This document shows positions 2,619 to 19,069 of a stretch of 64,000 nt of DNA, piece after piece. A model generated the notes under the pieces. It saw nothing but the letters and a program-made list of their open reading frames with translations, was not told the DNA's origin and searched no databases. The DNA comes from Hyalangium minutum (GTDB lineage Bacteria > Myxococcota > Myxococcia > Myxococcales > Myxococcaceae): positions 1 through 64,000 of the forward strand of contig NZ_JMCB01000031.1 of the NCBI RefSeq assembly GCF_000737315.1, written 5' to 3'. Numbering within the stretch: the stretch's first letter is position 1; each line of letters begins with the position of its first letter. Both the position numbers and the translations under genes were made by a program.

Positions 2619-3088
2619 TGGGCACCTCCCCGCGTGAGCGCATCCGGCCTCACCTTGCCCAGCGCCTGTGCCTGGCGCGGCAACTCTGCGAAGCGCTGGA
2701 AGTCTGCCGCGTTGAGGAGGAGCGGCCACCGCAAATCACGCGCTCGTGCGTACACGGCGTGCAGGTGGTTCCTCATCACGTTGGCCGTGCCGGGCTGAAT
2801 CTCCCCGCGCTGCATGCGCTCGGAGAGCCATTCCCAGACCTGCGCGCGGCTCGGCTTGGCGTGGTGGCCGAAGCGCTCCAGGGCCAGGCGGAAGGTGTTC
2901 GCGTGGGCCTTCTGGGTGTGGCGGCTCTGGTGCTGGAGGAAGGCCTTCTCGTACCACGCCAGGAGTGTGCCCAGCGTCGGCGTCTCCGCGCCAGCCTTCA
3001 GCTTCGCCCTGCCGAGCGCTCGCCCCTTACGCGACTCCCGGCGGGCTGTCGTCGCGGTGCTGCTTGGCGCTGCGCTGTCACCGCGCAC
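2615..3088 (-). pseudogene. Integrase core-binding (SAM-like) domain fragment (Int3), no catalytic domain; start uncertain
   Basis: TLGTLLAWYEKAFL...TQKAHANTFRLAL...QPGTANVMRNHLHAVYARA resembles the N-domain of Int2; stop overlaps the Int2 start (GTGA). Confidence 0.6.
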
Positions 3089-3132
3089 CTGCGCCTTGGT
3101 GCCGTACTCCCGGGTGGTTGCAGTCCAGCGCG

Positions 3133-3546
3133 TCAGTCTGTCTGCGTGCGCCGCTTGCTCCTTCGTCCTCCTTTTGGTGGCGGGGCGCCGTCCACCACGT
3201 GGTGCCTTACCGCCTCGCGGCACTCGCTTATCCGTGCCCTTGCGACGTGCAGAGCTGCGAGCGCCTCGAAGAACGAGGCCGCATACAACTTCGTCGGCGC
3301 CCCTCCTTCCGCCTGCGCCCTCTCGACTTCCGTCAGTCGCGATGCCTGTGTCAGTGTCTGCTCCACCTTCAAGAGCAGCTCGAACGCGTTGCCGAAGAGT
3401 TCGAACGCCTCGATCTCCTTCTGCTCCTGCGGCAGCCGCGCAAGTTCCGGTGGTGCCTCCCACGGCCCATGGCTGTGCGTTGTCTCGCTGCCCCCGCCCC
3501 TCAACAGCGTGAGCTTTGGCGGGCCCTTCATTGTGTCGTCTGCCAT
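3133..3546 (-). CDS. Hypothetical helical protein, 137 aa
   Basis: ATG with GGGAGG RBS; protein-like composition. Confidence 0.6.
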   Translation of the reverse strand: MADDTMKGPPKLTLLRGGGSETTHSHGPWEAPPELARLPQEQKEIEAFELFGNAFELLLKVEQTLTQASRLTEVERAQAEGGAPTKLYAASFFEALAALHVARARISECREAVRHHVVDGAPPPKGGRRSKRRTQTD

Positions 3547-4303
3547 GGTCGGCTGCCTCCCGTGAGTGGGCCGCCATCTTCGCCTGGGCGCTGGGCTGCA
3601 CGCACGCGCTGCCCGAGGCCTGCGCGCAGCTGCCCGCCCCGGTGTTACTAGCCGCCGCGCGCAGGCTCAACACCGCGAGCATGCCCAGCAGCAACACCAC
3701 CAGCACCGCCACCGCGAGCTTGAGCGAGGCCATGGCCGAGGCCCACCGCCGCTCGGCCGCGCGGGCCTGCTGCATGCGCAACATGCTGGTGAGCGCCGTG
3801 CGCGTGAGCGCGTCCGGCCTCACCTGGCCGAGGGCCTGCCCCATCCTGCGCAGCCCGGAGGACACCTCGGAGAGTTCCACGCACGCGGCGCTGTCGTGGC
3901 TCACCTCCAGCGCCAGCCCGTGCGGCGTGCTCACCACGTGCGCAGTCCACCGGCCTGGGGCCTTGGTGGCACTGCGCGGGGTGGCCACCACCAGCGCCGC
4001 CGCTCCCGTCTCCCGGTTGTAGGCCTGGTAGGTGCGGCCCACCTCGCCGGGCACTCCCTTGCACCGCCGGAGCACCCGGAACTGCCCCACGGTGTTGCGC
4101 TGCCACACCTGCTGAAAGTCTCGCTGCCGTGCCGTCATCGTGCCCGGCGCCATTGCTGGCGCCGTGCCAGCGCTCGCTCCCTCTGAGGCGCGCACGCTGG
4201 AGTGGGTTGCACCGTCCACGGCCGTGGACTCCCCGTCCGTGGCCGTGGACGGTGCGCAGCTGCCCGACATGGTGCCGGGGCCCTTGTCCTGGGGGGCGCT
4301 CAT
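3547..4303 (-). CDS. Kinase-N-lobe-like membrane protein; its own stop codon was not found (frame stays open to 2615)
   Basis: ATGA overlap with upstream gene at 4300-4303; NTVGQFRVLRRCKG..GRTYQAYNRETG parallels 6873-7703; TM segment LAVAVLVVLLLGMLAVL. Confidence 0.5.
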
Positions 4304-5079
4304 GAGTGCACCCCCACCTTGCGCAGCACCGCCGCCTCCACCACGCCCCAGGGCAGCACCGTGCGCACCGCCTGCGCGCACTCGGCCAGGCGCGCGGCGC
4401 GCTGGGTGGTGCTCACCAGCCCGGCAGCGGCGCCTGCCACGTCGAGCGCCCACTCAGGGTAGGCCGTGCTGCTCACGGCGGCCCACACCGCGTAGCGCGC
4501 GCAGTCCTCCTCCGTGCGCAGGTGCTCGGCGCCCACCTCCGGGCCCGCTGCCTGCCGGGCCGCCTCCAGCTCGGCCTGCGCAACCTCCTCCCCGGCCGCC
4601 CAGACCTGCACGGTTCGCAGCGCCTCGCGCAGTGCAGTCTCGGTGGGTGCGAGCCGGGGCAGGGCCACGCCTGCGCACGCGCACGCCGCGAGCACCAGCC
4701 AGCGCAGGGGCACGTCCGCCGCCACCGCCAGCCACAACAGGCGGTCGCCTCCGGGGCACTGGGCCCAGAGTTGCGCAGGGGTGCCCTGCTGGCCCTGGAG
4801 CCAGCGGATGAACTCGGGTGCTGCCTGCTCGCGCAGCACCCACGCCCCGAAGGCGGCGCGAGTGAGGGTGCGCAGCTGCGCGTGCTCAGCCAAGGGCGGC
4901 ATGAGCACCACCAGCGGGCGGGGCTGTACGGCCGAGGCCTGCGCGGACGGGGTGCCTGCGTGCTCAGCCAGCAGCGCGTCGAGCTGCTGCGCAACGCTGC
5001 GCGGGGTGGTGTGGGTGGGAGAGGTACGGGACTTGGAACCGGTGCTGCCGGGGTACTTCGCGCTCTGCCTGGTGCCCAT
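4300..5079 (-). CDS. Hypothetical all-helical protein, loosely resembling Imm5-like immunity domains
   Basis: LWAQCPGGDRLLWLA...LVLAACACA...ALRTVQVWAAGE pattern recalled from memory; family call tentative. Confidence 0.5.
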   Translation of the reverse strand: MGTRQSAKYPGSTGSKSRTSPTHTTPRSVAQQLDALLAEHAGTPSAQASAVQPRPLVVLMPPLAEHAQLRTLTRAAFGAWVLREQAAPEFIRWLQGQQGTPAQLWAQCPGGDRLLWLAVAADVPLRWLVLAACACAGVALPRLAPTETALREALRTVQVWAAGEEVAQAELEAARQAAGPEVGAEHLRTEEDCARYAVWAAVSSTAYPEWALDVAGAAAGLVSTTQRAARLAECAQAVRTVLPWGVVEAAVLRKVGVHS

Positions 5080-5562
5080 GGCGGGGGCCCTTCAAAGCGA
5101 AAGGGCCTGCTGACGGGGTTCAGGCCCGCCAACAGACCCTTTCGACACAGCGGCAGGTGCCCCCGCACGCGTGTGCCAACACCCTCCACCCCCAGCCGTG
5201 GACGGACGAATCCATCCGCGCACTGGTGGCGCTCGGGCTCGCAGAATGCCTTAGCATGGGCCGGTCTGGCCCTGCTAGCGCGCCCCGTGGTGCTGAACCC
5301 GTCCCCTGCGCGGGACGGCACCTAGTGCACGCGCGGGTGCAGGGTGCCCCCTGCGCAGCCCGGCGTTACCCGGGCTCCCGCCTCGCACCAGACCGTGCGC
5401 GGTCTGTCGCCTTCTCGTCAAGTGGGGTGGGTTGGACACCCGTAGTCGCGCAGTGCTTCCGCGCAGTTACAGCGCAGGCACGGCAGGTGCTACGCGTGCG
5501 CGCCCCTGCGCGTGCGTCTCCACTGCGCAGCGCAGTTGCACAGCCTGCGCAGGCCGCCCGGC

Positions 5563-5599
5563 CGTGAAATTTTCACGACTGCGCAGGTGAAACTTTCAC
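5563..5599. promoter_or_regulatory. Two tandem operator-like palindromes GTGAAA-N-TTTCAC
   Basis: CGTGAAA-T-TTTCACG at 5563-5577 and GTGAAA-C-TTTCAC at 5587-5599 in a ~700 bp intergenic region. Confidence 0.6.
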
Positions 5600-5684
5600 G
5601 CGCGCCCACGGCGTGGCGCTGCGCAACCCTCTGGATTCTGCCGGATTTCCACTGGCTGCGCGGCATTCGGTTTCACGGCCTTGC

Positions 5685-5748
5685 GCAGCACCAGGCCCTC
5701 GACATGGTGCCCGGCCGCGAGCTGGTGCAGGCGCTCGACGTGGTTCCC
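5685..5748 (+). repeat. Intergenic repeat family, copy group 1 (CTCGAC cores at 5698 and 5734)
   Basis: 5685-5742 matches 6774-6831 at 42/58 positions, ungapped. Confidence 0.75.
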
Positions 5749-5800
5749 TGGCCGCGCGCTGTCTGACGGTATCGTCGACCGCTGCTGAACCGGCGCCAGA

Positions 5801-6625
5801 CTACTTCGGCGTTTCTGTCTCGGGCTCCGCCTGCGCCCAGCCGGTCATCACAAGGAATTTCGCCATCGAGTGTGCAAGGTCTCCGTACTTCTTTTCGAGC
5901 GGTTCCATCTGACTGCGCAGATGACCCTCAAACCTTGCAAGGCGTGTCAGTTGAGCCTTGTAGGAGTACGGGCTTGCATCGGGCACGTGGCAATAGCCGA
6001 GGAGCGCCTTCCGATTCCTCTGCCACTCTGGTTCCAACTTAGTGAACGCCTTTGCCGTGGTCTCTGCGGCTTCGATGCTTCCGAGGAAGAGGCCGTGTCT
6101 GAACTCTTCGGCCATCACAACTGTTTCCGGGTCCAAATATTGGGCGTAGCGGGTCAGTGCGTCGTCAGTCCACTCGCTACTGAGCTTCGCCAAAGAGGTT
6201 GCTGCTTGCCCATGGGTTACTTCTGATTTCCCCCACGACGGATACTTGTCATTCAGATCAATGGCGCAGGCCCAATCCATTGCTCCTGAGTCTCTTGCAA
6301 TCGCGGCATACTGGTAGCGCTTGCGCTGTAGCTGAAGGCCGTCTTTGAACGCAAGAATCGGCTCGACCGCCTGAGCCACAGATCGCTCAAGCATCGTCAG
6401 CGCTATAAGCTTCAGCCTCTCTGCCTGAATCGCGGCAGCACGCTTGTCTGCGTTGTTCTGGTAGGTCATCACGCCCTGCACGCCAGCCCCAACAACTACC
6501 GACGCGATTGCAACCCAGCCGATTGTGGTGAGGCGCCGTAATCCATGCATGCCATCATTGGTTGTCTTACCCCAGATACCAATCAGCCCACCGACGAACG
6601 CGAACACAAGTCCTAGGTAGTCCAT
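5801..6625 (-). CDS. Lower-GC hypothetical protein with two N-terminal TM helices, 274 aa
   Basis: ATG 6625 with GGAGG RBS; MDYLGLVFAFVGGLIGIWG and IGWVAIASVVVGAGVQGV hydrophobic segments; visibly AT-richer than flanks. Confidence 0.75.
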   Translation of the reverse strand: MDYLGLVFAFVGGLIGIWGKTTNDGMHGLRRLTTIGWVAIASVVVGAGVQGVMTYQNNADKRAAAIQAERLKLIALTMLERSVAQAVEPILAFKDGLQLQRKRYQYAAIARDSGAMDWACAIDLNDKYPSWGKSEVTHGQAATSLAKLSSEWTDDALTRYAQYLDPETVVMAEEFRHGLFLGSIEAAETTAKAFTKLEPEWQRNRKALLGYCHVPDASPYSYKAQLTRLARFEGHLRSQMEPLEKKYGDLAHSMAKFLVMTGWAQAEPETETPK

Positions 6626-6773
6626 CGTCTTTGCACCTCCGCACCTCGCAAAAGAATTGGGCCGTTGAGTAAGGACGCCGCGTTCGAAATGTCCTCGGAC
6701 CACACGGCGTGCTCCCAGCATAGGCCAACCCTTGGGCTGGTGCTCATGGCACCTGCAAAAGGCCCAGCCGCGA

Positions 6774-6874
6774 GCAGCACCAGGTGCTCGACGCGGTGCC
6801 CGATCGGACGCTGCACCCGGTGCTCAACGCGCAGAGCCACCGCCGCCAGGAGCTAGGTGCTCGACGTGGTGCCT
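6774..6874 (+). repeat. Intergenic repeat family, copy group 2 (GGTGCTCRACG at 6783, 6819, 6856)
   Basis: Three copies with 36-37 bp period; AGCACC-A-GGTGCT palindrome at 6776-6788. Confidence 0.75.
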
Positions 6875-7703
6875 ACCGTGCGGCTGGCACCGGAGGCGGA
6901 TGCGGCAGGGTGCTACTGGGTTCCTTCGGCGCTGGCATGCTGGGCCAGTAGCAGGTGTCCTTCCATTCGTACGCGTCATCACCGCAAGGCGGAGACTTCT
7001 TCAACGCCACCCAGCAGCCGCCGTTGATTGGCGTCTCAAGCCGCCCTTTGCACTTCCCCTCGCTGTCAGTCCGGTACTGTCCGCGGAAGAGCTTCTTCGG
7101 CATGTCGCGTGCAATCCCCGGGAGTGCTTCCCGGCCGTCCATGTTGCCCACGGGCAAGGCTTCCGGCTCCGCGAGCACCTCTTCCGCCACGGACGCGAGG
7201 GCGGCCGGCTCTGGCTGCTGTTCCCCTGGCGTCTGCGCAGATCTCCACGCCCGTGGGGCCAGCGCAGCAACTGCCAGCCCCGCAGCGACAGCGAGCCACC
7301 TCCAGTTGGTTGCTGGTCTCTCCATGCGCACGGCGGGGGCCTTGCGCGCGCCCAGGTGGACTGCTGCCTCTGGGTGTTGCTCCAGGCCTTCGAGCGCGCA
7401 GGCCAGCACGTCCAACCCCGCGTCCAGTTGGCCCAGTGGAGTGGCCCCCTCGGGGGCGCGCTCCACCTCGAGCGCGAGGTACGGCTCCGGCTTCGTCGCC
7501 GCCCTCACTCGGATCCGCCAGTCTTGCAGGGGGATGTGGTGGCTCTGGGCCACTCCGCGCACCACAAGAGCAGGCCTGCCCGTCAGCCGGTGCTTCGCCT
7601 TGTAGACCCGGCCTACCTCTGCCGCCGTCGTCACCCCACGAAGCCTGCGCAGAATCTCGTACGGCCCCAGTCGGTTCCGCTCCAGCTTGTCTTCCTCGCT
7701 CAC
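6873..7703 (-). CDS. Myxobacterial kinase-N-lobe-like / TM / Cys-rich C-terminal domain protein (no catalytic kinase core)
   Basis: GTG 7703 with GGAGG RBS; NRLGPYEILRRL..GRVYKAKHRLTG; TM WLAVAAGLAVAALA; C-terminal CKGRLETPINGGCW..PPCGDDAYEWKDTCY typical of myxobacterial kinase tails. Confidence 0.75.
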   Translation of the reverse strand: MSEEDKLERNRLGPYEILRRLRGVTTAAEVGRVYKAKHRLTGRPALVVRGVAQSHHIPLQDWRIRVRAATKPEPYLALEVERAPEGATPLGQLDAGLDVLACALEGLEQHPEAAVHLGARKAPAVRMERPATNWRWLAVAAGLAVAALAPRAWRSAQTPGEQQPEPAALASVAEEVLAEPEALPVGNMDGREALPGIARDMPKKLFRGQYRTDSEGKCKGRLETPINGGCWVALKKSPPCGDDAYEWKDTCYWPSMPAPKEPSSTLPHPPPVPAAR

Positions 7704-7792
7704 AGATCCGGCCCTCCCTCGTGCCACGCCGGGAGGGTTTACCACGCGGAGTTGCGCGCGGGGCGCGTGGTGACGCGCAGGCCGCGCAGTCA

Positions 7793-7850
7793 GTGGTGCT
7801 CGACATGCTGCCCCGGCCGGTGAGGCGCGGCGGTCCTCGACGTGCTGCTC
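7793..7850 (+). repeat. Intergenic repeat family, copy group 3 (cores at 7799 and 7836)
   Basis: 7793-7824 matches 8358-8389 at 28/32; the two cores are 37 bp apart. Confidence 0.75.
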
Positions 7851-7877
7851 CTGTGTGAGGTCGGGTAGAATCTACCC

Positions 7878-8261
7878 ATGCGCTACCTTGTTCTTCTTCC
7901 TTTGTTTGCAGCTTGCAGTCCGGACAGATCGCCGACCGAAGTCTTGGTGGACAATCGCTTCGGGCGTGCGTGGAACGTTCACATGGTTCTCACCGTTCAC
8001 GAGAGAAAGGGAGAACCGGCCTACGCCACGTGGTCAGGGGACGCCGCCATAGCTCCTCAGAGCAGGTTCCAAACAATTGCCAGCGTTGAACCACTTGAAG
8101 GCGAGCACTTTGAGTTCATGGTGACGGGAGAGACCGGCGAGCCTGGGGCGTTCCTCAACGTTTCTGGACCCATCACCACCAGCATTACTTACTGCGCAAC
8201 CTACCGGTTGGAGGATGGTGCCAATGGAGGGGCATGCGGGCGGCGGCCAGATTTTTGGTGA
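7878..8261 (+). CDS. Lower-GC lipoprotein, 127 aa
   Basis: MRYLVLLPLFAAC lipobox; no SD; GGGTAGA-A-TCTACCC palindrome containing TAGAAT abuts the ATG. Confidence 0.75.
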   Translation: MRYLVLLPLFAACSPDRSPTEVLVDNRFGRAWNVHMVLTVHERKGEPAYATWSGDAAIAPQSRFQTIASVEPLEGEHFEFMVTGETGEPGAFLNVSGPITTSITYCATYRLEDGANGGACGRRPDFW

Positions 8262-8357
8262 CCCAACCCATCGGTTCTCGTAGTGCTGGTCCTTGCCGAG
8301 CTGGTTGGGCGAGCGGGCTGCTACCGATCGGACGATCGCCGGTGGTGCCAGGGCGTT

Positions 8358-8389
8358 GTGGTGCTCGACCTGCTGCCCTGGTCGGGGAG
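8358..8389 (+). repeat. Intergenic repeat family, copy 4
   Basis: gtggtgctcgacctgctgccctggtcggggag, direct repeat of 7793-7824. Confidence 0.75.
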
Positions 8390-8433
8390 CAGTCTCAATG
8401 TCCGCGGAGGTGGCGCCCAACCGCGTGCTGGCC

Positions 8434-8760
8434 TCAGTTCTGCTTCCGTCTCCGCGCTGACTTCGTGGGCTCCGCAAGCTCCGCGTTCGTGCGTGCCGCC
8501 TTCTCTGCCTCGCGCTGCCGGCACGCTTCGCTCCGGGTTTCGCTGTACGCCTTCACGTTCGGGCCATCCACGGGCCAGCCCTCGTCAGTCACGGCCACCC
8601 ACACGCCGCCGTAGCCCCCAGCGAGGGCGGTGGAGTGGAGCAGTCCGCGCTCGCACCAATGCTCAACGGTGCGCACGTCCCGCTGAAGGCGGATGGCCAC
8701 TTCGTTCACGACATCCCACCGCGTGGCCCCAGCTGGGAGGAGAGAGAGAGGAGGTGTCAA
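8434..8760 (-). CDS. Excisionase/MerR-like HTH protein, paralog A, 108 aa
   Basis: TTG start with GGAG RBS; VNEVAIRLQRDVRTVEHWCERGLL HTH pattern; basic tail. Confidence 0.65.
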   Translation of the reverse strand: MTPPLSLLPAGATRWDVVNEVAIRLQRDVRTVEHWCERGLLHSTALAGGYGGVWVAVTDEGWPVDGPNVKAYSETRSEACRQREAEKAARTNAELAEPTKSARRRKQN

Positions 8761-8806
8761 TGGTTGCTCCAGAAGGTTCGCTGTCTCGAATGGCCTCGGG
8801 CATGGC

Positions 8807-9133
8807 TCAGGCCCGCTTCTTCTTCGTGTCCTTGGCCTTCGCGCGAGCTCGCGTCGCCGCGGCTGTGGCCTTGGGCTGGCCCACCTTCGCGCGCGCGCTG
8901 CGGTGGGCGCGATACTCCTGCACCTTGGGCCCATCCACCGGCCAGCCTCCCTCACGCACTGCCACCCAGATTCCCAGGTAGCCGCCTGCGAGGCCGATGG
9001 AGTGGAACAGCCCCTGTTCACACGCGTTGCGCACGGTGCGCACTTCCTTGCCCGTGCGAATGGCCACGTCGTTGAGCAGGGCCCACGCCTGGGCACCAGG
9101 CGGGAGCAGTTCTAGGGGAGGGGGTTTGTTCAT
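8807..9133 (-). CDS. Excisionase/MerR-like HTH protein, paralog B, 108 aa
   Basis: ATG with GGAG RBS; LNDVAIRTGKEVRTVRNACEQGLF; shares LAGGY.G.WVAV...GWPVDGP.V with paralog A. Confidence 0.65.
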   Translation of the reverse strand: MNKPPPLELLPPGAQAWALLNDVAIRTGKEVRTVRNACEQGLFHSIGLAGGYLGIWVAVREGGWPVDGPKVQEYRAHRSARAKVGQPKATAAATRARAKAKDTKKKRA

Positions 9134-9411
9134 GAGGCTCTCCAGGTACGTGGGCTCCAAGCACGCCCAACGCCACAGACCCAAGCAGAGCCCATCACCT
9201 CCCGCAACCCGGTGCCCACCAGCACCCTTCACCGCTGCTGCCTCGCCATGCTCCGCGCTGCTCTTGTTACTGCCGAGGGGGACACGCGGCGCTGTGGTGA
9301 CTGGGCCGCCCGGAAAGAGGAACTCAGGTTGGCTGGCTGGTGGGCCCCAACCGAGTGCAGAGCCCTCCCCGGCCGCGTGTCCCCCTCGGCAGCACTTGGA
9401 GACGCCAGCCC

Positions 9412-9780
9412 ATGCCAGCAACGCCCCTCACTCCCGCGGAAACCCTCGCTGTGGCCCTGCGCCGCCAGCACCCCTCATGTGCAGCTGCCGCTCTGGGGCT
9501 GCCGGTGGAGGTGCTTGCCGCCCTTCGTGACTGCGAGCACGCCGCAGTGGGGCTGCTCCAGTCCCTGGCCGAGGTTGCCGGCGCCTGTGCTCGAGGAGAT
9601 GCGGAGGCCGCCTCCGTGGCCCTCTCTCACGTGGGCACCACCGTCCACCTGGCCGAGGCCGTCTTCCTCCGCGCCTGCAAGCGGCACAATGTGGCACCGG
9701 AGGCCGTGGTGGGCGCGCTGGCTTCGGTTCGAGTCGTGCTCCAGGGGCTCGCAGACTCTGCCGGTGCGCCCGAGCACTAG
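9412..9780 (+). CDS. Hypothetical Ala-rich protein
   Basis: ATG 9412 with GGAG upstream; no recognisable motif. Confidence 0.35.
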   Translation: MPATPLTPAETLAVALRRQHPSCAAAALGLPVEVLAALRDCEHAAVGLLQSLAEVAGACARGDAEAASVALSHVGTTVHLAEAVFLRACKRHNVAPEAVVGALASVRVVLQGLADSAGAPEH

Positions 9781-9884
9781 CCGTTGTTGGCGAGCACCGG
9801 GCCAGAGGTGCTCGCCCTTCTGCTCATGGTTCTGGCTTCAACGCGCTGCCGCCTTGGCAGCCCTGCTCTGTACCTTCTCTCACT

Positions 9885-10559
9885 ATGCGCTACCTGCTCC
9901 TGCTTCTCCTGTGCACCGCTGCCTGCTCCACCCCTTCACCCCGCACCTACTCCCAGGGTGTCCCTGGGCCAGCCTTCCCCGCCCCGCCCATGGCACCTGT
10001 CGGCACCGGAGCGCCCGTGGTCGGACAGCCTGGCCAGCGCCCCCAGCAGCACCCTCGGAGTCCTCATACCCGCGTCCTCCCTCCCAGCAATGAACCGGGC
10101 CTGTGGGCTGCTGAGTCTCCTGTAGGGACCCGCTCGACGAAGCCGGTGGGCCCGCCGGAGATCTTCGGCGTCACGTTGCCGTTCGTCCCGAACGCGGACA
10201 CCGAAGAAGTTGCCGAGCGGCCCACTCGCGTGTGCGCTCAGAGCATGGGGGCACTGCTGGCCAAAGCGGAGCCTCAGATCGAGCTCGCCGCACTCCCTCC
10301 CGAGGCCCGCCGCTGCCTCGCGGCGCGGCTGTACCTCAAGTGCGCCGAAGGGTTGCTTGCTCTCTTTCCGGAGGAGGGAATCCCTGGAAGCTGGCTTGAT
10401 TTCCCGGCTGAGCGTCGCCTCCACCTCGCGGTCCTCGCGACGGCGAAGCGCTTCAAGGACGAGAGCTGCAAGGGCGTGGTGTTCCCCATCCGCGCCGAGC
10501 ATGCGATTGTCCAAGTGGGCCGTGTCTGGGAGCAGCGGCTTGACGAGGGGAAGCTATGA
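9885..10559 (+). CDS. Myxobacterial lipoprotein, 224 aa, Pro-rich linker plus Cys-containing helical domain
   Basis: MRYLLLLLLCTAAC lipobox; RVLPPSNEPGLW motif; four Cys in C-terminal half. Confidence 0.8.
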   Translation: MRYLLLLLLCTAACSTPSPRTYSQGVPGPAFPAPPMAPVGTGAPVVGQPGQRPQQHPRSPHTRVLPPSNEPGLWAAESPVGTRSTKPVGPPEIFGVTLPFVPNADTEEVAERPTRVCAQSMGALLAKAEPQIELAALPPEARRCLAARLYLKCAEGLLALFPEEGIPGSWLDFPAERRLHLAVLATAKRFKDESCKGVVFPIRAEHAIVQVGRVWEQRLDEGKL

Positions 10560-10765
10560 GCAGCAGTGAGCCGCACGAGGAGGAGACTCCTGTTCTCGGG
10601 CAGGACCCCGACAGCCCGTCGCCCGAGTTCTTCGCGTGGGCCAAGTCGATGACCCCGACAGAGCGCATGGATGTACTGAGGCGTTTCTACGACAAGTGGG
10701 ACCCTCCAACTGTTCCGGCGAATGGTGCCCTTGCGGCTCACCCCACCGAGCCAGAGGAGGGGTAG
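10556..10765 (+). CDS. Small acidic partner protein, 69 aa
   Basis: ATGA overlap with the lipoprotein stop. Confidence 0.6.
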   Translation: MSSSEPHEEETPVLGQDPDSPSPEFFAWAKSMTPTERMDVLRRFYDKWDPPTVPANGALAAHPTEPEEG

Positions 10766-10829
10766 CCCCCGAGGGCCCGGCCGCGCGCCGAGTGTGAAGC
10801 CTCGACGTGTGGCGAACCCAGCGCTTCGC

Positions 10830-11144
10830 TCATATTGACCCTGCTTGTGCAGGGTCAGAGGCCAGAGCCCGGGTGAAGACGGAGCCCACTTCCTCAAGCG
10901 TCCGTTCCGGATCCTCGGCCCAGTGGTCGAGCTTGCCGGGCTCCACGCCAGCGGCAAGTTCCAACCGACGTTCTACCCGTGTGCACAAAGCGGACGGGCC
11001 GCTGGCGGCCTTCAGCAGCGGCCAGCCTATGGCCTTTACTCCCCGGGACCAGCGTGCCCGCACCAAGTCGTACGCCGCGAGAAGCACCTCGCGCTCGGGC
11101 TTCTGCAATGGCGGGGGCCTACTTCCCCTAACGGCGCTGCTCAT
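10830..11144 (-). CDS. Phage-type hypothetical protein, DUF6197-like (tentative)
   Basis: LDHWAEDPERTLEEV motif; ATGA overlap with upstream gene. Confidence 0.55.
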   Translation of the reverse strand: MSSAVRGSRPPPLQKPEREVLLAAYDLVRARWSRGVKAIGWPLLKAASGPSALCTRVERRLELAAGVEPGKLDHWAEDPERTLEEVGSVFTRALASDPAQAGSI

Positions 11145-11521
11145 TCGATGCCTCCTCTCTTCAACGCGTGGTGAGCCTTGCGGACGGCCGCGCGCTGCGC
11201 AGGCGTGGTCTGCTCGGGGAACGCCTCCAGCAGCACCACCAGCGCCTCTCCAAGCAGGTGAGCCACGTCGCCCGCCTTCGCGTCCGGGTCCACCTCGCAG
11301 AGCAAACGGTGAGCACGCCGGACTGCCGCCTCACTCTCCCCCTGCATGTGTCCGAGGGCCACGCTCAGTTCCTGTGCGTGGTGGCCTTGTTCCTCCGGAA
11401 GGCCCTCGGTGAGCTCTCCCAACTCTTCACTCGCACGCTGCACGTTGGTGCGCACCTGCTCTAGAAGCAGCTTCACAGATCGCGCGCGCTGCACTGCATT
11501 CTTGTCGGTCGCAGTCTTCAC
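11141..11521 (-). CDS. Hypothetical coiled-coil protein, 126 aa
   Basis: GTG 11521 with GAGG RBS; coupled to the downstream gene. Confidence 0.55.
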   Translation of the reverse strand: MKTATDKNAVQRARSVKLLLEQVRTNVQRASEELGELTEGLPEEQGHHAQELSVALGHMQGESEAAVRRAHRLLCEVDPDAKAGDVAHLLGEALVVLLEAFPEQTTPAQRAAVRKAHHALKRGGIE

Positions 11522-11638
11522 GGGCCCTCTTGCTCGGCACCATATCGAAGCTTGAAGGTCACGAAGGGACGCAGGGAGGAGGCAGCAGCGTGGCCGTGGC
11601 TCTCGATCTTGGACGCGGGCAGCAGCCCGTTGGTGGGG

Positions 11639-11653
11639 GGGCACCACGTCGAG
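11639..11653 (-). repeat. Intergenic repeat family, inverted copy (CTCGACGTGGTGCCC)
   Basis: Plus strand GGGCACCACGTCGAG is the exact reverse complement of the consensus. Confidence 0.65.
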
Positions 11654-11853
11654 GGCACGGAGCTGTGCGCGGAAGTTTGAGGATCTGGTGCAGCGTGCGG
11701 CTGAGGGCATCACCGACCAGGCGTGGCTTGCTCTTCGGCAAAAGTCGTCCGAAGGGCCGGGGCGTACTTCCTTGGCGGTATCGCGTGGGCTCTCGCTCCG
11801 TCTTTACCCTGCTCCTTCCATAGGCGCTCGTTGGCCGCCTACTCTCGTGGACG

Positions 11854-14625
11854 GTGCCTGCGGTGAATCCCCCTACGACTTCACGTTTCCGTGTCGTGCT
11901 GGCCACGGCTCTGCTGGTCAACGCCTTGGGCTGTGCGGACTTCGAAAAGGAGGCCGCTGCATTCTGCGAGCGCAACCCTTCACGGTGCGGCCACGGCGTG
12001 GGTAACGAGGAACTTCCTGATGCAGGAGGCACTACAGGGGAACCGCCACCAGACGCGGGTGCAGTGGACACGACAGCCCCAACCATCACTCAGAGTTCGC
12101 AGTCCGCAGCTGGCGTAGACGGTCCGGGCACCATCACCTTCAGCGTGACCGCCCATGACGACGAATCGCCCCAACTCAGCTTCGCATGGACAGCCAGTCA
12201 TGAAGCACTGGGCATCCCTTCAAATACTGACACCACCAGCGAGGTGGACTGGACCTCACCGTCCTGCCTCCCAGCAGGCACCGTCGTGACAGTGACCGTT
12301 GTCGTCACCAACGGCAGCGATGTGTCCACTGTCAAGACGTTCACCCTCCCGGCCACGTCGTGCCCAACCCCCTCTGTGGCCGCAGGCCCCCATCACTCGC
12401 TGGCGCTGCGACGCGACGGCACCGTCTGGGCCTGGGGCAACAACGACAACGGCCAGCTCGGCGATGAGTCCACCACGCAGCGGCTCTCGCCGGTACGGGT
12501 GCCCGGCCTCACCAGCGTCACCGCATTGGCCGCAGGTGGTACCCACTCCTTGGCGCTGCGAAGCGACGGCAGCGTCTGGGCCTGGGGCAACAACGGCACC
12601 GGCCAACTCGGCGATGGGTCCACCATTAATCGACCCTCGCCGGTACAGGTGCCCGGCCTCACCAGCGTCACCGCCTTGGCCGCAGGTGGTCGCCACTCCT
12701 TGGCGCTGCGAAGCGACGGCAGCGTCTGGGCCTGGGGCAACAACGGCACCGGCCAACTCGGCGATGGGTCCACCATTAATCGACCCTCGCCGGTACAGGT
12801 GCCCGGCCTCACCAGCGTCACCGCCTTGGCCACAGGCCCCGAGTACTCGTTGGCGCTGCGGAGTGACGGCACCGTCTGGGCATGGGGATCCAACTTCTAC
12901 GGCCAACTCGGCGATGGGTCCACCACGCAGCGGCGCTCGCCGGTACAGGTGATCGGCCTCACCAGCGTCACCGCCTTGGCCGCAGGTGGTACCCACTCCT
13001 TGGCGCTACGAAGCGACGGCACCGTCTGGGCCTGGGGCGACAACTTCTACGGCCAACTCGGCGATGGGTCCACCACCCGGCGGATCATTCCGGCTCAGGT
13101 GCCCGGCTTCACCAGCGTCACCGCCCTGGCCGCAAGTGATGGGCACTCGATGGCGCTGCGGAGCGACGGCACCGTCTGGGTCTGGGGATCCAACGACTAC
13201 GGCCAATTCGGCGATGGGTCCTCCTCCCCTTTTTTTGGGAGGGCCTCGCCGGCACAGGTGCCCAACCTCACCAGCGTCACCGCCTTGGCCACAGGTGGTC
13301 GCCACTCCTTGGCGCTGCGAAGTGATGGCACCGTCTGGGCTTGGGGCGACAACGCCTTCGGCCAGATCGGTATTGGTTTCTCCAAGCGACAGGCAGCCCC
13401 TGTTCAATCAGCTGGGTTGACCGACATCATCGGCTTGGCCGCAGGTGATGGCCACTCCTTGGCGCTGCGGAGCGATGGCACCGTCTGGGCCTGGGGCGAC
13501 AACGCCGCCGGCGAACTCGGCGATGGGTCCACCATTGATCGGCCTTCGCCGGTACAGGTGCCCAACCTCACCAGCGTCACCGCCTTGGCCGCAGGTGGTA
13601 GCTACTCCTTGGCGCTGCGGAGCGACGGCACCGTCTGGGCCTGGGGATCCAACTTCTACGGCCAACTCGGCGATGGGTCCTCCATTAGTCGGCTCTCGCC
13701 GGTCCAGGTGCCCAACCTCACCAGCGTCACCGCCTTGGCCGCAGGTGGTCGCCACTCCTTGGCGCTGCGAAGCAACGGCACCGTCTGGGCCTGGGGCTAC
13801 AACGGCACCGGCCAACTCGGCGATGGGTCCACCATTGATCGGCCTTCGCCGGTACAGGTGCCCGGCCTCACCAGCGTCATCGCCCTGACCGCAGGCTTCA
13901 ACCACTCGGTGGCGCTGCGTGGTGGCGAGCGCACCGTCTGGGCCTGGGGCAACAACGACAACGGCCAGCTCGGCGATGGGTCCACCACGCAGCGGCTCTC
14001 GCCGGTCCAGGTGCCCAGCCTCACCAGCGTCACCGCATTGGCCGCAGGCTACTTCCACTCCTTGGCGCTGCGGAGCAACGGCACCGTCTGGGCCTGGGGC
14101 GACAACTCCTCCGGCCAACTCGGCGATGGGTCTACCACTCAGCGGCCCGCGCCGGTGCAGGTGCCCAACCTCACCAGCGTCAACGCCTTGGCCGCAGGTG
14201 GTCGCCACTCCTTGACGCTGCGAAGCGACGGCAGCGTCTGGGCCTGGGGCAACAACGGCACCGGCCAACTCGGCGATGGGTCCACCATTAATCGACCCTC
14301 GCCGGTACAGGTGCCCGGCCTCACCAGCGTCACCGCATTGGCCGCAGGTGGTACCCACTCCTTGGCGCTGCGAAGCGACGGCAGCGTCTGGGCCTGGGGC
14401 AACAACGGCACCGGCCAACTCGGCGATGGGTCCACCATTAATCGACCCTCGCCGGTACAGGTGCCCGGCCTCACCAGCGTTGTCGCCCTGACCGCAGGCT
14501 TTAACCACTCGGTGGCGCTGCGTGGCGAGCGCACCGTCTGGGCATGGGGCGACAACACCTACGGCCAAATCGGCAATGGGGCGGCAGCGATGATGCCCCT
14601 ACCCGTCCGAGCACTGCTTCCCTGA
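11854..14625 (+). CDS. RCC1/BLIP-II-like beta-propeller lipoprotein with N-terminal Ig-like domain, 923 aa
   Basis: LLVNALGC lipobox; 15 units of DG(T/S)VWAWGxNxxGQLGDG...P..V...AAG..HSLAL. Confidence 0.92.
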   Translation: MPAVNPPTTSRFRVVLATALLVNALGCADFEKEAAAFCERNPSRCGHGVGNEELPDAGGTTGEPPPDAGAVDTTAPTITQSSQSAAGVDGPGTITFSVTAHDDESPQLSFAWTASHEALGIPSNTDTTSEVDWTSPSCLPAGTVVTVTVVVTNGSDVSTVKTFTLPATSCPTPSVAAGPHHSLALRRDGTVWAWGNNDNGQLGDESTTQRLSPVRVPGLTSVTALAAGGTHSLALRSDGSVWAWGNNGTGQLGDGSTINRPSPVQVPGLTSVTALAAGGRHSLALRSDGSVWAWGNNGTGQLGDGSTINRPSPVQVPGLTSVTALATGPEYSLALRSDGTVWAWGSNFYGQLGDGSTTQRRSPVQVIGLTSVTALAAGGTHSLALRSDGTVWAWGDNFYGQLGDGSTTRRIIPAQVPGFTSVTALAASDGHSMALRSDGTVWVWGSNDYGQFGDGSSSPFFGRASPAQVPNLTSVTALATGGRHSLALRSDGTVWAWGDNAFGQIGIGFSKRQAAPVQSAGLTDIIGLAAGDGHSLALRSDGTVWAWGDNAAGELGDGSTIDRPSPVQVPNLTSVTALAAGGSYSLALRSDGTVWAWGSNFYGQLGDGSSISRLSPVQVPNLTSVTALAAGGRHSLALRSNGTVWAWGYNGTGQLGDGSTIDRPSPVQVPGLTSVIALTAGFNHSVALRGGERTVWAWGNNDNGQLGDGSTTQRLSPVQVPSLTSVTALAAGYFHSLALRSNGTVWAWGDNSSGQLGDGSTTQRPAPVQVPNLTSVNALAAGGRHSLTLRSDGSVWAWGNNGTGQLGDGSTINRPSPVQVPGLTSVTALAAGGTHSLALRSDGSVWAWGNNGTGQLGDGSTINRPSPVQVPGLTSVVALTAGFNHSVALRGERTVWAWGDNTYGQIGNGAAAMMPLPVRALLP
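12376..14580 (+). repeat. ~150 bp tandem coding repeats (15 RCC1 units), some nearly identical in DNA
   Basis: Units 2, 3, 13 and 14 share GSVWAWGNNGTGQLGDGSTINRPSPVQVPGLTSV with matching DNA. Confidence 0.9.
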
Positions 14626-15035
14626 AACATTGGAACCGGAGGGGACGGCACGGTGGATCCAATTGCCCTGAAGAGCCCACTGCTGCGCACCAGGGGTCTC
14701 CCTGGTGCAGAGGCGCCGACTCCAGCACTGCGCCACAAGCGGTCGGTTCTGGCGCGGTGTTTGCGCCACCTGTAACCGCGCGAAACCATTGGGCCTTACC
14801 CTATCGTAAATGGCCCGGAATTGTGGCGCACTCTCTGTGCCTTCGGCCACCTGCAGCGCGCCTCCTCCTACCTGGGGTGCTCCACGGACAAGGATCGCCC
14901 GTCTTGGCCCTCCCAGGGGACCTTATTGGGCTCGTCCCCGGTGCTGGACCTCGACCGCCAGTTGCTCACAAGACCTCGACTTGGCGATGGTCCACTCGCC
15001 GTGCGCTGGACCCCGACCCTTGCGCGCAGCCCGGC

Positions 15036-15073
15036 GCGCAGGGCCTCGACGTAGCGCAGGGCCTCGACGTAGC
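15036..15073 (+). repeat. 18 bp tandem duplication gcgcagggcctcgacgta x2, containing the CTCGACGT core
   Basis: Read directly at 15036-15053 and 15054-15071, just upstream of the DUF2158 gene. Confidence 0.8.
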
Positions 15074-15105
15074 TTTAGCTACCACCTGCGCGGCAAGGGG
15101 ACGAC

Positions 15106-15336
15106 ATGGCAACGGGAAGCACCACGGGGCGGTTTGAGGTCGGCGACATCGTGAAGCTCAAGAGCGGCGGCCCGGAGATGACAGTGGAGGAAACGTATGA
15201 CGACTACGACTCGTGCAAGTGCCAGTGGTTTGCTGGCAAGAAGCTGGAGACCGGTAGCTTCCCGTATGCCTCGCTGGAACGCGCTCCAGTGAAGGCGCCG
15301 ATCCCGGCACCCGGCACTGGCAGGGCGGGCGCGTGA
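15106..15336 (+). CDS. YodC/DUF2158 family protein
   Basis: FEVGDIVKLKSGGPEMTV...CQWF.G signature. Confidence 0.85.
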   Translation: MATGSTTGRFEVGDIVKLKSGGPEMTVEETYDDYDSCKCQWFAGKKLETGSFPYASLERAPVKAPIPAPGTGRAGA

Positions 15337-15599
15337 CACCCGCCGAGGTGGCCGACTGGATGCTGGCTCATCTCCATCGCGACGGCTGCGTCTACCAAGA
15401 CGACGTCGTCGACATGCTCGCGAGACACGGCGCAGACGTCTTGCTGCGCGAGAATGCCGACGGCAACCTAGTCCTGAGCAAACCGGTCCTCGACGCTTTC
15501 ATGAAGGTCTCGCCCGAGACGGTTGTGTGGATCAAGCCAGAGCGCTACTGGCGATGGCGTGTTGCCGAAGATGAGCCTGGCCGCGAACAACGCGGCTGA
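15333..15599 (+). CDS. Small conserved hypothetical protein, DUF6953-like (from recall)
   Basis: VADWML...G.VYQDDVV...ENADGNLVLSK.VL.AF...VVW...RYWRWR...EPGREQ; GTGA overlap. Confidence 0.65.
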   Translation: MTPAEVADWMLAHLHRDGCVYQDDVVDMLARHGADVLLRENADGNLVLSKPVLDAFMKVSPETVVWIKPERYWRWRVAEDEPGREQRG

Positions 15600-15666
15600 G
15601 GAGGCACACGGCCGTCGGCGGCGGCTCGTGCCCATCCTCGGCTTGATTACCGAATAGCCCTGCGCT

Positions 15667-16413
15667 TCAACGATCCTGAGCGCTTGGATTCTGCGGACGG
15701 CCTGCACGTCTTCGCGGGTGCTCAAGTGGCTTGGCGGGGCCACCCTGGCCCTCCCAGGTGCCGTTCAAAAAGCGGCGCAGAGAGGCTGCCGAGATACGGC
15801 ATAGGCCCCCAGGCTGCTCCGGAACCTTCGGCAGTCCCCGACTCACCTGCTGCGCGGCCTTGCGGATGGAGCACTCCCCGCTGACCACCAGCCGCGCCGC
15901 CTCCTGCAGCAGCGCCAAGTTCTTGAACGGCCGGCCGATGTGCTTCCCCTGGGCGCGCGCGTGGTCCTGCCCTTCCTTCGACCGGCGACGGAGCCGCTTC
16001 AGCTCTGTGGCCGCCATGCCGCTCGTGACTCCCAGCAGGATGGGCTTGTTGTCGTCGTCCTCCTCTAGCCACTTCTCCGCGATGGAGGCGCACGTCACGC
16101 CAGCCGCCTCCAGGCTCTGGATCTGGAGCAGCATGAACGCCTGGTCACGGCCGAACCGGTCCAGCGCCCAGACCAGGAACGCCTGCGGTTGCTGCTCCAT
16201 GCCCGCCATCGCATCGCCCACCGCGCGCAGGAACTCGGCACGGTCGTTCTTGGTGCCCTTGGCTACCTCGACGTACCAGACAGGGAACCACCCGCGCTCA
16301 TCGCAGAAGGCCTGCATGCGCGCGCGCTGCACCTCGGGGTCCTGCTCATCCGAGGAGACCCGGCGGTAGCAGCGGCACACAGTGACGCCGGGTGGAGGGG
16401 TGAGGGGCTTCAT
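15667..16413 (-). CDS. Serine recombinase (resolvase/invertase family), 248 aa
   Basis: YRRVSSDEQ catalytic motif, LDRFGR, GKHIGRP and C-terminal HTH. Confidence 0.9.
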   Translation of the reverse strand: MKPLTPPPGVTVCRCYRRVSSDEQDPEVQRARMQAFCDERGWFPVWYVEVAKGTKNDRAEFLRAVGDAMAGMEQQPQAFLVWALDRFGRDQAFMLLQIQSLEAAGVTCASIAEKWLEEDDDNKPILLGVTSGMAATELKRLRRRSKEGQDHARAQGKHIGRPFKNLALLQEAARLVVSGECSIRKAAQQVSRGLPKVPEQPGGLCRISAASLRRFLNGTWEGQGGPAKPLEHPRRRAGRPQNPSAQDR

Positions 16414-16823
16414 GGTGTGCCTCGCTTCTTCCGCCATGCCCGGCGCGTCCGAGGCTCGGTCCACCCCCATAGCTTGGCCTGCAGCAGCGGGTTTGCCTTT
16501 GCCACGCGGATGAAGTCCTTGAGGCTCAGCGTCACCAGCTTGGATCCACGCGTGCCCGCCTTCGTCACCACCGCGGGCATGCTGTCCTTGCGCGCCTTGG
16601 AGGCTTCCGCCGTCTCGCGGTAGAGGCGCTCTACCGGCCGGTGCCCTCCTGACTTGCACTCAGCCCAGAGCACTCCGGCCTCAACGTCCGGCGCGCCATG
16701 CTGGCGCTGGAACTGGAGGCAACGCTTCGCACCGGGGGCGAGCTTGCGCAGCTCCCGCGCCGTCTCCCGCTCAAACGTCTTCCACTTCTTCACCCCTTTG
16801 CTGGTCATTCCTCGGCGGCCCAC
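16410..16823 (-). CDS. PD-(D/E)XK nuclease, phage Holliday-junction-resolvase-like
   Basis: WKTFERETAREL...QHGAPDV...AECKS pattern; GTG start with AAGGAG RBS. Confidence 0.65.
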   Translation of the reverse strand: MGRRGMTSKGVKKWKTFERETARELRKLAPGAKRCLQFQRQHGAPDVEAGVLWAECKSGGHRPVERLYRETAEASKARKDSMPAVVTKAGTRGSKLVTLSLKDFIRVAKANPLLQAKLWGWTEPRTRRAWRKKRGTP

Positions 16824-16891
16824 TGGTGGCTTCTCCTTCCGTTCAACGCGGTTGAGTGCTGCTGGTGCTCTGTACGCATCGGCTGTCTTCG

Positions 16892-17311
16892 TCACGAGGT
16901 GCTCCGGGTAAGAGGGAGGGAGGGCAGGAGGGGGCCCGCGCCCACCACCGGCAGGCGCTTGGCGAGTTCGCGGGCGATGAAGAGCAGCGCCACGCACTGG
17001 CGGCGGGTGTGGCCCTCGGGGCTCTCCCACGGCAGATGCCCGTTGCCCTCGGCCACGGCCAGCCTGTCTCGAAGCCTCTGCCCCTCGGAGCTGTGGCCGC
17101 CCTCGGACAGGGCGAACTCCTCGAGCAGCTCGGCGCGCACGTCGAAGCGCACCGCGTCCAAGGCCTTGTCCACCTCCGCCCAGGCGGCCTTGGTGAGCCT
17201 CAGGTAGTGGAAGGCCACCTGCAGCGAGGGGTGGCCGTGGGCTACGTCCTCGGCGGCCTTGTCCAGGGCCCGGAGGACTTCCCAGCGCAGGGCGGGGCTC
17301 ACCGAGGGCAT
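16892..17311 (-). CDS. Hypothetical phage-type protein, 139 aa
   Basis: ATG with GGGAGG RBS, overlapping the upstream gene. Confidence 0.6.
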   Translation of the reverse strand: MPSVSPALRWEVLRALDKAAEDVAHGHPSLQVAFHYLRLTKAAWAEVDKALDAVRFDVRAELLEEFALSEGGHSSEGQRLRDRLAVAEGNGHLPWESPEGHTRRQCVALLFIARELAKRLPVVGAGPLLPSLPLTRSTS

Positions 17312-17793
17312 GGGCGCCTCCCGCTTGCCAGGATCCGGATGAGTGCCGCCTGGCGGCCCTCCTTCGCCCTCAACCACCGGTCCCGAAGTGGGCTTGAGGC
17401 CTCAGGCACTTCGAGCAGCAGCGCGCCGATCTCCTCGGCCTCCCACACACGCTCGGCCGGCGCGGTGGGCAACGTTGGCCTCGGATCCACAGGCTTGGGT
17501 GCTGCCAGGGCTGGTGCCTGCAGCTGTACGGGCCTCGCCTTGGGCGCTGGGCGTGGCGCGGTGGCCTTGCGCGGCACCGGAGGCGGCGCGGGCCTCTTCA
17601 GGTACGCCCCGCGCACCCCTTCACTCTTGGGCGCGGGAGGCAGCCTCCGGAGGGCTGCGGCATGTTCCTCCGGTACCTCTCGGGCCGCTTCGCTCCTGCT
17701 CACCGTGGGTGTGGAGGTGCCCAGCAGTTGAGCCAGTTGGCCCTGTGTGTAGCCGAGGGTCTTGCGCAGCTCGGCAGCTTCCGCCCCCGTCAT
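17299..17793 (-). CDS. XRE-family HTH protein with Pro-rich linker
   Basis: ELRKTLGYTQGQLAQLLGTSTPTVSRSE HTH; ATGA overlap. Confidence 0.8.
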   Translation of the reverse strand: MTGAEAAELRKTLGYTQGQLAQLLGTSTPTVSRSEAAREVPEEHAAALRRLPPAPKSEGVRGAYLKRPAPPPVPRKATAPRPAPKARPVQLQAPALAAPKPVDPRPTLPTAPAERVWEAEEIGALLLEVPEASSPLRDRWLRAKEGRQAALIRILASGRRPCPR

Positions 17794-18833: not shown

Positions 18834-19069
18834 TCGGTGCCTCCCTTCGTGTTGGGAGGCAGGCCGGACGCCTCTCGCGCCGCCTTCACCTTGTCCACGG
18901 TGCCCTTGAAGCCGGAGGCGCGCAGCACCCTGAGAATCTGGGTGTCCGTGAGGCCCGCCCGGCACTGGCGCGCCACGGCCTTGCGGAACTCCTCCTCCGC
19001 CTGGGTGCGCAGCTGCGCGTTCTGCGCGTACGCCTGCTCCAGGGCCTTGCCACCCTCGTGCGCGCTCAC
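18830..19069 (-). CDS. Small hypothetical protein, 79 aa
   Basis: GTG with GGAGG RBS; GTGA overlaps on both sides. Confidence 0.55.
   Translation of the reverse strand: MSAHEGGKALEQAYAQNAQLRTQAEEEFRKAVARQCRAGLTDTQILRVLRASGFKGTVDKVKAAREASGLPPNTKGGTE

Follow-up and report, generated by a model that had tools for sequence, protein, structure and literature searches.

Integrons, T4-type phages and Acinetobacter plasmids all contain gene modules bounded by short repeats; such modules have not been described from myxobacteria, nor with their repeats laid out as tandem arrays. In T4-type phages, recombination between the intergenic repeats termed promoter early stem-loops (PeSLs) shuffles ORFan genes and yields mini-circles (PMC2839356). 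Here we analyse a locus of Hyalangium minutum DSM 14724 (PMC5441343) in which tandem intergenic repeats bracket single genes, and whose behaviour, by analogy, appears closest to that of the PeSL system. The DNA studied comprises 64 kb from the start of contig JMCB01000031.1 (assembly GCA_000737315.1) and is referred to below as the window, and window coordinates are contig coordinates; the evidence comes from this one genome and a few short metagenome contigs.

A family of tandem intergenic repeats

The 13-mer CTCGACNTGSTGC matches the window exactly six times, at 5698, 6860, 7799, 7836 and 8364 on the plus strand and at 11641 on the minus strand, and nowhere else in the 64 kb. Dinucleotide shuffles gave an expectation of 0.07, and none of 100 shuffles reached six. 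A preliminary description of this DNA, made from the letters alone, had listed the same six positions; its identity counts between repeat copies (42/58, 28/32 and 15/19) were exact on recount, and the pairing at 36–37 bp that it reported agrees with measured spacings of 36, 36, 37 and 37 bp. Tandem Repeats Finder (TRF) likewise reports a period of 36 at 5692–5761. As the 13-mer had been picked post hoc, we performed a leave-one-out test in which a profile built from eight units was used to search the 64 kb for the ninth. Eight of the nine units were recovered, at ranks 4–9 and ahead of every unrelated site in the window (E ≤ 0.034). The remaining unit, u4, a CTCAAC variant at 6823, was weak in this test (E 4.6); it lies in register within a tandem triplet and is complementary at 19 of 23 positions to the second inverted copy at 11677–11699.

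Similarity extends past the 13-mer, with flank identity of up to 17/25 compared with a random mean of 7.0 ± 2.3, and because the flanks are also similar we take the repeat to be a unit of approximately 36–40 nt, roughly GAGCWGCACCNGGTGCTCGACNTGSTGCCC, rather than the 13-mer. The consensus of the unit begins GAGCWGCACCNGGTGCTCGAC. Each unit contains inverted GCACC/GGTGC half-sites followed by a near-invariant CTCGAC, which is present in eight of the nine units used for profile building and absent from two later additions, u9 and u11b; in u3 and u4 the half-sites form a perfect 11-bp palindrome, GCACCNGGTGC.

Four plus-oriented clusters succeed one another along the locus. Cluster 1 (5681–5756) consists of u1 and u2 in tandem, with CTCGAC at 5698 and 5734, and lies 3′ of a gene for a predicted transmembrane (TM) protein. 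Cluster 2 (6770–6882) holds u3, u4 and u5 in tandem, with cores at 6787, 6823 and 6860, the 13-mer of u5 abutting the stop codon of the gene at 6873–7703. Cluster 3 (7782–7858), with u6 and u7 in tandem (cores 7799 and 7836), occupies the divergent region between that gene and a lipoprotein gene, and cluster 4 (8347–8386) consists of u8 alone (core 8364), in the gap where the lipoprotein and HTH2 genes converge, the latter encoding a small helix–turn–helix (HTH) protein. A degenerate unit, u9 (9794–9833, plus), reads GCGAGCACC-N8-GGTGCTCGC with perfect 9-bp inverted arms and directly follows the stop codon of orf122. The only inverted cluster (11631–11699, minus) comprises u11 (core 11641–11653) and u11b (11672–11699) in the divergent region upstream of the gene at 11141–11521 and of an RCC1-repeat gene.

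As the preliminary description had stated, the repeats are intergenic: every unit falls between genes called on the record. Except for the inverted cluster, the units keep the plus orientation whatever strand the neighbouring gene is on (gene strands across the clusters run −, −, +, −, −, +, and cluster sizes range from one to three units), and they are found at 3′ ends, at 5′ ends and in convergent and divergent gaps alike. Units that flank a gene are direct copies, similar in register, as in the 42/58 match and in the 28/32 identity of u8 to u6.

Eight units are well supported, and u4, u11b and the site at 9794–9833 are assigned by position and by similarity to other units. The last of these, u9, is non-significant on score alone and was accepted only because an array occupies the corresponding position of a related element (described below), immediately past the stop codon of orf122. 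Among the near matches noted earlier, those at 5734, 6787, 6823 and 9807 were taken as units (9807, within u9, by position only), whereas 10801, 15045 and 15063 scored E 10–18 against the profile, a level that dozens of random sites reach as well. Because these three are indistinguishable from chance, the earlier statement that almost every gene block is bracketed proved too broad: the repeats bracket three single-gene blocks and an HTH module and do not extend to 15 kb. The 15/19 identity to 7832–7850 is also seen at five further window sites outside the repeat clusters. A perfect 18-bp tandem duplication at 15036–15071 (GCGCAGGGCCTCGACGTA twice), just upstream of a DUF2158/DUF6953 gene pair, contains CTCGAC yet is separate from the family. 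The repeat family is real and is confined to 5.68–11.70 kb of the 64-kb window.

Folding of all eight repeat regions as single-stranded DNA gave no stable hairpin (z −1.3 to +1.3 against shuffles), and the units have no attC-like fold, in line with the earlier remark that the sites lack integron attC ends. No promoter-like (sigma-70) or terminator-like (intrinsic) site was found in 5000–16000. A reading of the unit as a sigma-54 or extracytoplasmic function (ECF) promoter was dropped by eye, the spacing being wrong. Pattern scans of public data were made for the repeat. With a two-unit pattern, the matches listed for the genome collection were chance matches and unrelated tandem repeats of 9–39 bp; a stricter two-unit pattern gave 21 matches in metagenomes, all of them ParA-type LDLLPADF..NLDL coding sequence or simple tandem repeats; and scans of viral contigs returned single chance matches or a collagen-like coding repeat. 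A 12-bp CTGGTGCTCGAC repeat met in one contig (L253) belongs to a different family.

Single genes between the clusters, two of foreign composition

Three cargo genes lie between the four clusters. Cargo gene 1 (5801–6625, minus), the TM gene, encodes 274 aa with two N-terminal hydrophobic helices; its GC content is 57% and its third-position GC 65%, compared with ~70% in the surroundings, and among 5.8 billion proteins it found no homologue but itself. Cargo gene 2 (6873–7703, minus; 276 aa) has an ordinary GC content of 69%. Its first ~100 residues are 36% identical (E 4e-9) to residues 68–158 of a 562-aa protein (2615–4303) from the neighbouring recombinase operon, and both proteins open with a motif that recalls a degenerate kinase N-lobe (LGPYEILRRL...). 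The N-terminus being paralogous to an operon protein, this 'cassette' partly duplicates a gene of the island itself. Cargo gene 3 (7878–8261, plus), which is absent from the gene calls of the record, encodes a 127-aa putative lipoprotein with the signal peptide MRYLVLLPLFAACS and has a GC content of 58%. The drops in GC coincide with the gene bodies, and two of the three inserted genes are of foreign composition (57–58% GC versus ~69% around them).

A separate observation concerns the small lipoproteins encoded at 7878 and 9885, which are unrelated to each other yet carry near-identical signal peptides (MRYLVLLPLFAACS and MRYLLLLLLCTAACS); in each case a repeat unit of the same orientation lies 42–74 nt upstream.

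Gene content differs from a related element at the repeats

The orf122–HTH–HTH module next to the repeats has relatives in metagenome contigs, one from JGI (L122) and four from Logan runs (L123–L126), at 70–75% nucleotide identity. In L124 the last HTH gene is followed only by a 234-nt tandem array (TRF period 48) and then by a block homologous to the window at 5487–5528, with 83% identity over 42 nt within a longer aligned stretch. In the window this conserved block, which spans 5444–5552 and has 5487–5528 as its best stretch, marks the far edge of the variable interval. The same interval, from the last HTH gene to the conserved block, therefore holds a 234-nt array in L124 versus 2.9 kb with eight units and three genes in Hyalangium.

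Several comparisons indicate that the arrays of the two elements belong to one family. The first ~21 nt of the 48-nt units of the relative match the window units in register; u4 (GCTGCACCCGGTGCTCAA) agrees with an L124 unit (GCTGCACCGGGTGCTCAA) at 17 of 18 positions, and u3 with an L124 unit at 19 of 23. A profile built from window units only has its best matches in L123–L126 on the arrays, and, in the other direction, a profile built from the relative's units only has u3 as its best match in the window (E 0.019) and also finds u11b, u4 and u1. In both elements the repeats run in the same direction with respect to the HTH genes. In L123 a second array (B), with unit lengths of ~44, 46, 23 and 44 nt, directly follows the stop codon of the orf122 homologue, where the window has u9, to which it is the positional homologue. 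The relative's two arrays, A and B, align collinearly with each other (78% over 119 nt) and run uninterrupted on both sides of the HTH module, with units of ~48 bp. A tblastx comparison of the flanks of the relatives returned high-GC noise only.

The same family, orientation and position in both elements show that the arrays are older than the split between the elements and mark both ends of the HTH/orf122 module, which makes them ancestral module junctions. In Hyalangium, three single-gene modules split the array that runs from the HTH genes towards the recombinase operon into four fragments. Homologous islands thus differ in gene content, where a fixed content would have spoken against the shuffling proposed in the preliminary description; the comparison is with one contig, in which an unbroken array stands against three genes, and on it gene content varies exactly at the repeats. 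Whether the three genes came into the array or were lost by the relative, the gain or loss took place at the repeats themselves. All three differences lie inside the array, and the ~580 bp of adjoining spacer (5100–5680) is untouched, which suggests that the array is a preferred site for gene differences and not a bystander.

Proposed recombination between repeat copies

The reading that we tentatively favour, with a confidence somewhat short of even, is that modules are gained and lost at the arrays when repeat copies recombine with one another. Entry of a DNA circle that bears one unit, through exchange with a unit of the array, would place direct units on both sides of the new gene; exchange between two such units would remove the gene again, and the result would be a gene-free array such as that of the relative. 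The exchange could be the work of a recombinase of the island, with the near-invariant CTCGAC core as its target, or of short-homology recombination. The numbers of units, eight in the window and four in the relative, are compatible with this model. A site-specific enzyme would suit the near-invariant six-base core, the partly inverted arms and the adjoining operon of integrase-like proteins; the variable cluster sizes, the absence of a fixed cassette boundary and the gene-free tandem sites speak against such an enzyme.

Other observations weigh against recombination between copies. The units are ~55–75% identical, with exact runs of 13–20 bp, and are a poor substrate for RecA; cluster sizes are 2, 3, 2 and 1, and no cassette boundary is constant relative to the unit. 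The full junction is seen in one short-read contig of 1.5 kb, L124, and assemblers can skip sequence at repeats; three other contigs agree over the first ~150–190 nt of the array only. The relative, at 70–75% identity, is not a close sister, and no excised circle, sister-strain empty site or crossover point was seen, circles not having been sought. The frequency of the repeat was assessed over the 64-kb window. The proposal of a cassette-shuffling platform in the preliminary description is borne out in that gene content differs at the repeats, and nothing in the data shows site-specific recombination, circles or a role of any integrase.

The island and its neighbouring genes

The window has a GC content of ~70%. 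Positions 1 to ~21 kb look foreign, with a weaker third-position GC bias, and carry a RusA-like gene along with genes for integrase-like proteins, a resolvase, a D12 methyltransferase and small proteins of phage families. The window contains no tRNA gene and no Rfam match, and a search for att-type direct repeats that would bound the island found none. Comparison of 5100–11900 with phage and plasmid records by blastn gave zero matches, loci related to the integrase and to a prophage gene were absent from viral contigs or distant only, and the genes at 5.8–11.5 kb had no convincing match in Pfam, PHROGs or NCBIfam (two weak sub-threshold Pfam matches, DUF6197 and Laminin_I). The host of the arrays is a rare myxobacterial integrative, prophage-like island.

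On one side of the repeats lies a four-gene recombinase operon (1–5079, minus) whose reading frames overlap by 4 bp and whose products are 259, 562, 457 and at least 415 aa long, the contig starting inside the operon. Three products are integrase-like, with PHROG integrase matches and one weak sub-threshold match to Pfam Phage_integrase, and the last two are paralogues (33% identity). The spacer between this operon and cluster 1 carries two copies of a palindrome, GTGAAANTTTCAC, at 5564–5576 and 5587–5599, 23 bp apart; the stretch that holds them is absent from L124.

On the other side the conserved module (8434–9780), which the repeats flank and which in the relative is flanked by full arrays, comprises HTH2 (8434–8760, minus), HTH1 (8807–9133, minus) and orf122 (9412–9780, plus). 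The HTH1 protein has an adjacent paralogue and a handful of relatives among 5.8 billion proteins; only 12 of the 1.8 billion representatives covered by an exhaustive profile search were related to it, and a sequence search of the PDB found nothing. Its structure model had a predicted local distance difference test (pLDDT) score of 51. In more distant relatives (L373–L377) a small HTH gene and a gene for a Resolvase-domain protein share an overlap of 4 bp; in L122 a resolvase 73% identical to the window at 15749–16386 comes after four HTH paralogues in tandem. The corresponding small serine recombinase of the window (15667–16413, minus; Resolvase domain), a homologue of which directly follows the HTH genes in relatives, is here separated from them by 6.5 kb and closes a different operon. 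The gene overlap, together with the order in L122, makes it probable that the HTH proteins and the serine recombinase are partners. Between the divergent HTH1 and orf122 genes lies a perfect 21-bp inverted repeat (9270–9290 and 9372–9392, 81 nt between the arms) whose arms are conserved in L122; it is likely to be the operator of the HTH proteins and is a more obvious candidate for this than the repeat units.

Two further features of the island were noted. The 8-bp palindrome CTGCGCAG has 19 copies in the window compared with 6.3 expected, 18 of them within the first 21 kb (782–20765) and the remaining one at 58290, with a cluster at 5523–5586 and paired copies within the paralogous N-termini of the two integrase genes. 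The palindrome may be linked, as a site, to the island methyltransferase, or it may be a word that the host genome avoids. The RCC1-like protein (11863–14625) is a lipoprotein-like product of 920 aa with 13–14 repeats of 150 nt, and some repeat copies are 100% identical over stretches of at least 21 nt, which points to recent expansion or gene conversion.

Alternative readings

Less likely than recombination between copies, but to be taken seriously, is the possibility that the arrays are protein-binding iterons, whether arm-type or accessory recombinase sites, sites for the excisionase-like HTH proteins or operators, and that the genes were inserted by unrelated events, the bracketing being a by-product. 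Gene-free tandem arrays of 4–5 units in the relative suit cooperative binding better than they suit one site per cassette, and the inverted half-sites of each unit, perfected as an 11-bp palindrome in u3 and u4, have the look of a binding site. With small HTH genes on one side and a recombinase operon on the other, the arrays also stand where att arms are usually found, and the coupling of the HTH family to a serine recombinase gene in the more distant relatives points the same way. However, three independent insertions into an array of ~0.2–0.3 kb would still need explaining, arrays at 3′ ends, 5′ ends and convergent gaps alike have no consistent regulatory position, and the 21-bp inverted repeat in the HTH/orf122 promoter region is a better candidate for an HTH operator; moreover, the more distant HTH–resolvase relatives have no arrays in the little sequence on hand. 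Binding of a protein and recombination between copies are not mutually exclusive.

It is rather unlikely that the arrays are a decaying, functionless minisatellite that expanded by slippage and later received illegitimate insertions and duplications. The degeneracy of the units, their uneven lengths (36–37 nt in the window, 23–63 nt in the relative) and the lack of a significant fold or of a promoter or terminator match would all be expected of such DNA, but elements whose genes are 70–75% identical still agree in the position, the orientation and the 5′ half of the unit, at a distance where other local non-coding DNA no longer aligns, and CTCGAC is kept in eight of nine profile units (not in u9 or u11b).

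Improbable to much the same degree is that the units are the sites of a dedicated, non-integron cassette system in which recombinases of the island, either those of the four-gene tyrosine-recombinase operon or the HTH–resolvase pair, insert and excise single-gene circles at CTCGAC, the arrays of the relative being empty docking sites. We consider still more doubtful a dedicated platform of the integron type, in which the units would be recombination sites for the tyrosine-recombinase operon or for the HTH–resolvase pair and would capture and excise single-gene circles. The arrays adjoin the four-gene operon, direct repeats flank single genes, and the near-invariant 6-bp core with partly inverted arms, like the 9-8-9 architecture of u9, fits a crossover site. 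Against this stand the mixed gene orientations, the lack of an attC-like hairpin and the tandem arrays without genes between the sites, which in the relative argue against one site per cassette in the manner of integrons. The neighbouring recombinases are not IntI-like either (the best match to an NCBIfam integron/XerA integrase model scores 17 bits, compared with a cut-off of 220 bits).

A relic of a repeated coding sequence (V/A-L-D-x-x-P in the plus frame), an alternative raised in the preliminary description, can be set aside as very improbable: although periods of 36 and 48 nt are multiples of three and the CTCGAC/CTCGAG difference between the elements would be a third-position D/E change, the frame is broken by the 37-bp spacings of the window and by the ~44, 46, 23 and 44-nt units of L123, the apparent conservation carries no information because any NTG codon is hydrophobic, plus-strand open reading frames through the units are short or antisense to real genes, and the pattern scans of public data match ParA-type LDLLP coding repeats by chance.

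Comparison with known systems

Lambda-like arm-type Int/Xis sites are ~10 bp long, lie within a single att region and form direct repeats between small excisionase-like HTH genes and integrase genes. The Hyalangium direct repeats also lie between excisionase-like HTH genes and integrase genes, but their arrays occur at several junctions and on both sides of the HTH module, with genes between them. The stoperators of cluster A mycobacteriophages are asymmetric single sites on the scale of a 13-mer in prophage intergenic gaps, and their orientation follows transcription. Asymmetric sites of this scale, repeated in prophage intergenic gaps, are common to both; in Hyalangium, however, plus-oriented units flank both minus- and plus-strand genes and stand in tandem. 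Unlike CRISPR repeats, the units are contiguous at a period of 36–37 bp and have no spacers, and as regards dispersed intergenic repeats of the REP/BIME or NIME type, no unit lies in the window outside 5.68–11.70 kb.

The plasmid dif (pdif) sites of Acinetobacter alternate in orientation. The modules between them share with those of Hyalangium that they are bounded by short repeats resembling recombination sites and are shuffled between related replicons (PMC6449649, PMC13141974). However, pdif sites are 28-bp XerC-6-XerD sites, whereas the Hyalangium units are 36–48 nt long, direct save for one cluster, tandem and unrelated in sequence, and the dif-like 11-6-11 layout is absent from them. The operon at 1–5079, rather than the repeats, invites comparison with RIT, GInt, SE and Tn554 elements (PMC10214605, PMC3414803), as its overlapping frames and three integrase-like products recall their core modules; its proteins of 457–562 aa compare with 315–410 aa in RIT and have no detectable family match, and the terminal repeats of those elements are single inverted repeats, unlike the Hyalangium arrays.

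Integron cassettes share with the present locus single-gene modules that are bounded by repeats (attC in integrons) and lie near tyrosine recombinase genes. The Hyalangium units are direct repeats without an attC hairpin or R and L boxes, the orientations of the genes are mixed, and the sites form clusters of 1–3 units as well as tandem sites free of genes. With PeSLs (PMC2839356, PMC4122927) the locus shares short conserved intergenic repeats that bracket ORFan genes in a hyperplastic region of a mobile genome, a gene content that differs between relatives exactly at the repeats (here in the single contig L124), and the proposal of recombination between repeats with mini-circle intermediates, circles having been demonstrated for PeSLs and not sought here. 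A PeSL, however, consists of a sigma-70 promoter and a terminator stem-loop, whereas the Hyalangium units have neither, stand in tandem and are oriented alike, regardless of which way the neighbouring gene runs.

The repeats are not attC sites, PeSLs, dif sites or CRISPR repeats. At present they are a well-defined lead, not yet a system. If the arrays do drive the gain and loss of ORFan genes, they would represent a third sequence solution to the same problem and would help to locate cargo hot spots across the mobile fraction of myxobacterial genomes, which is large and poorly annotated. The arrangement is of a known kind; its sequence family and its tandem-array layout are its own.

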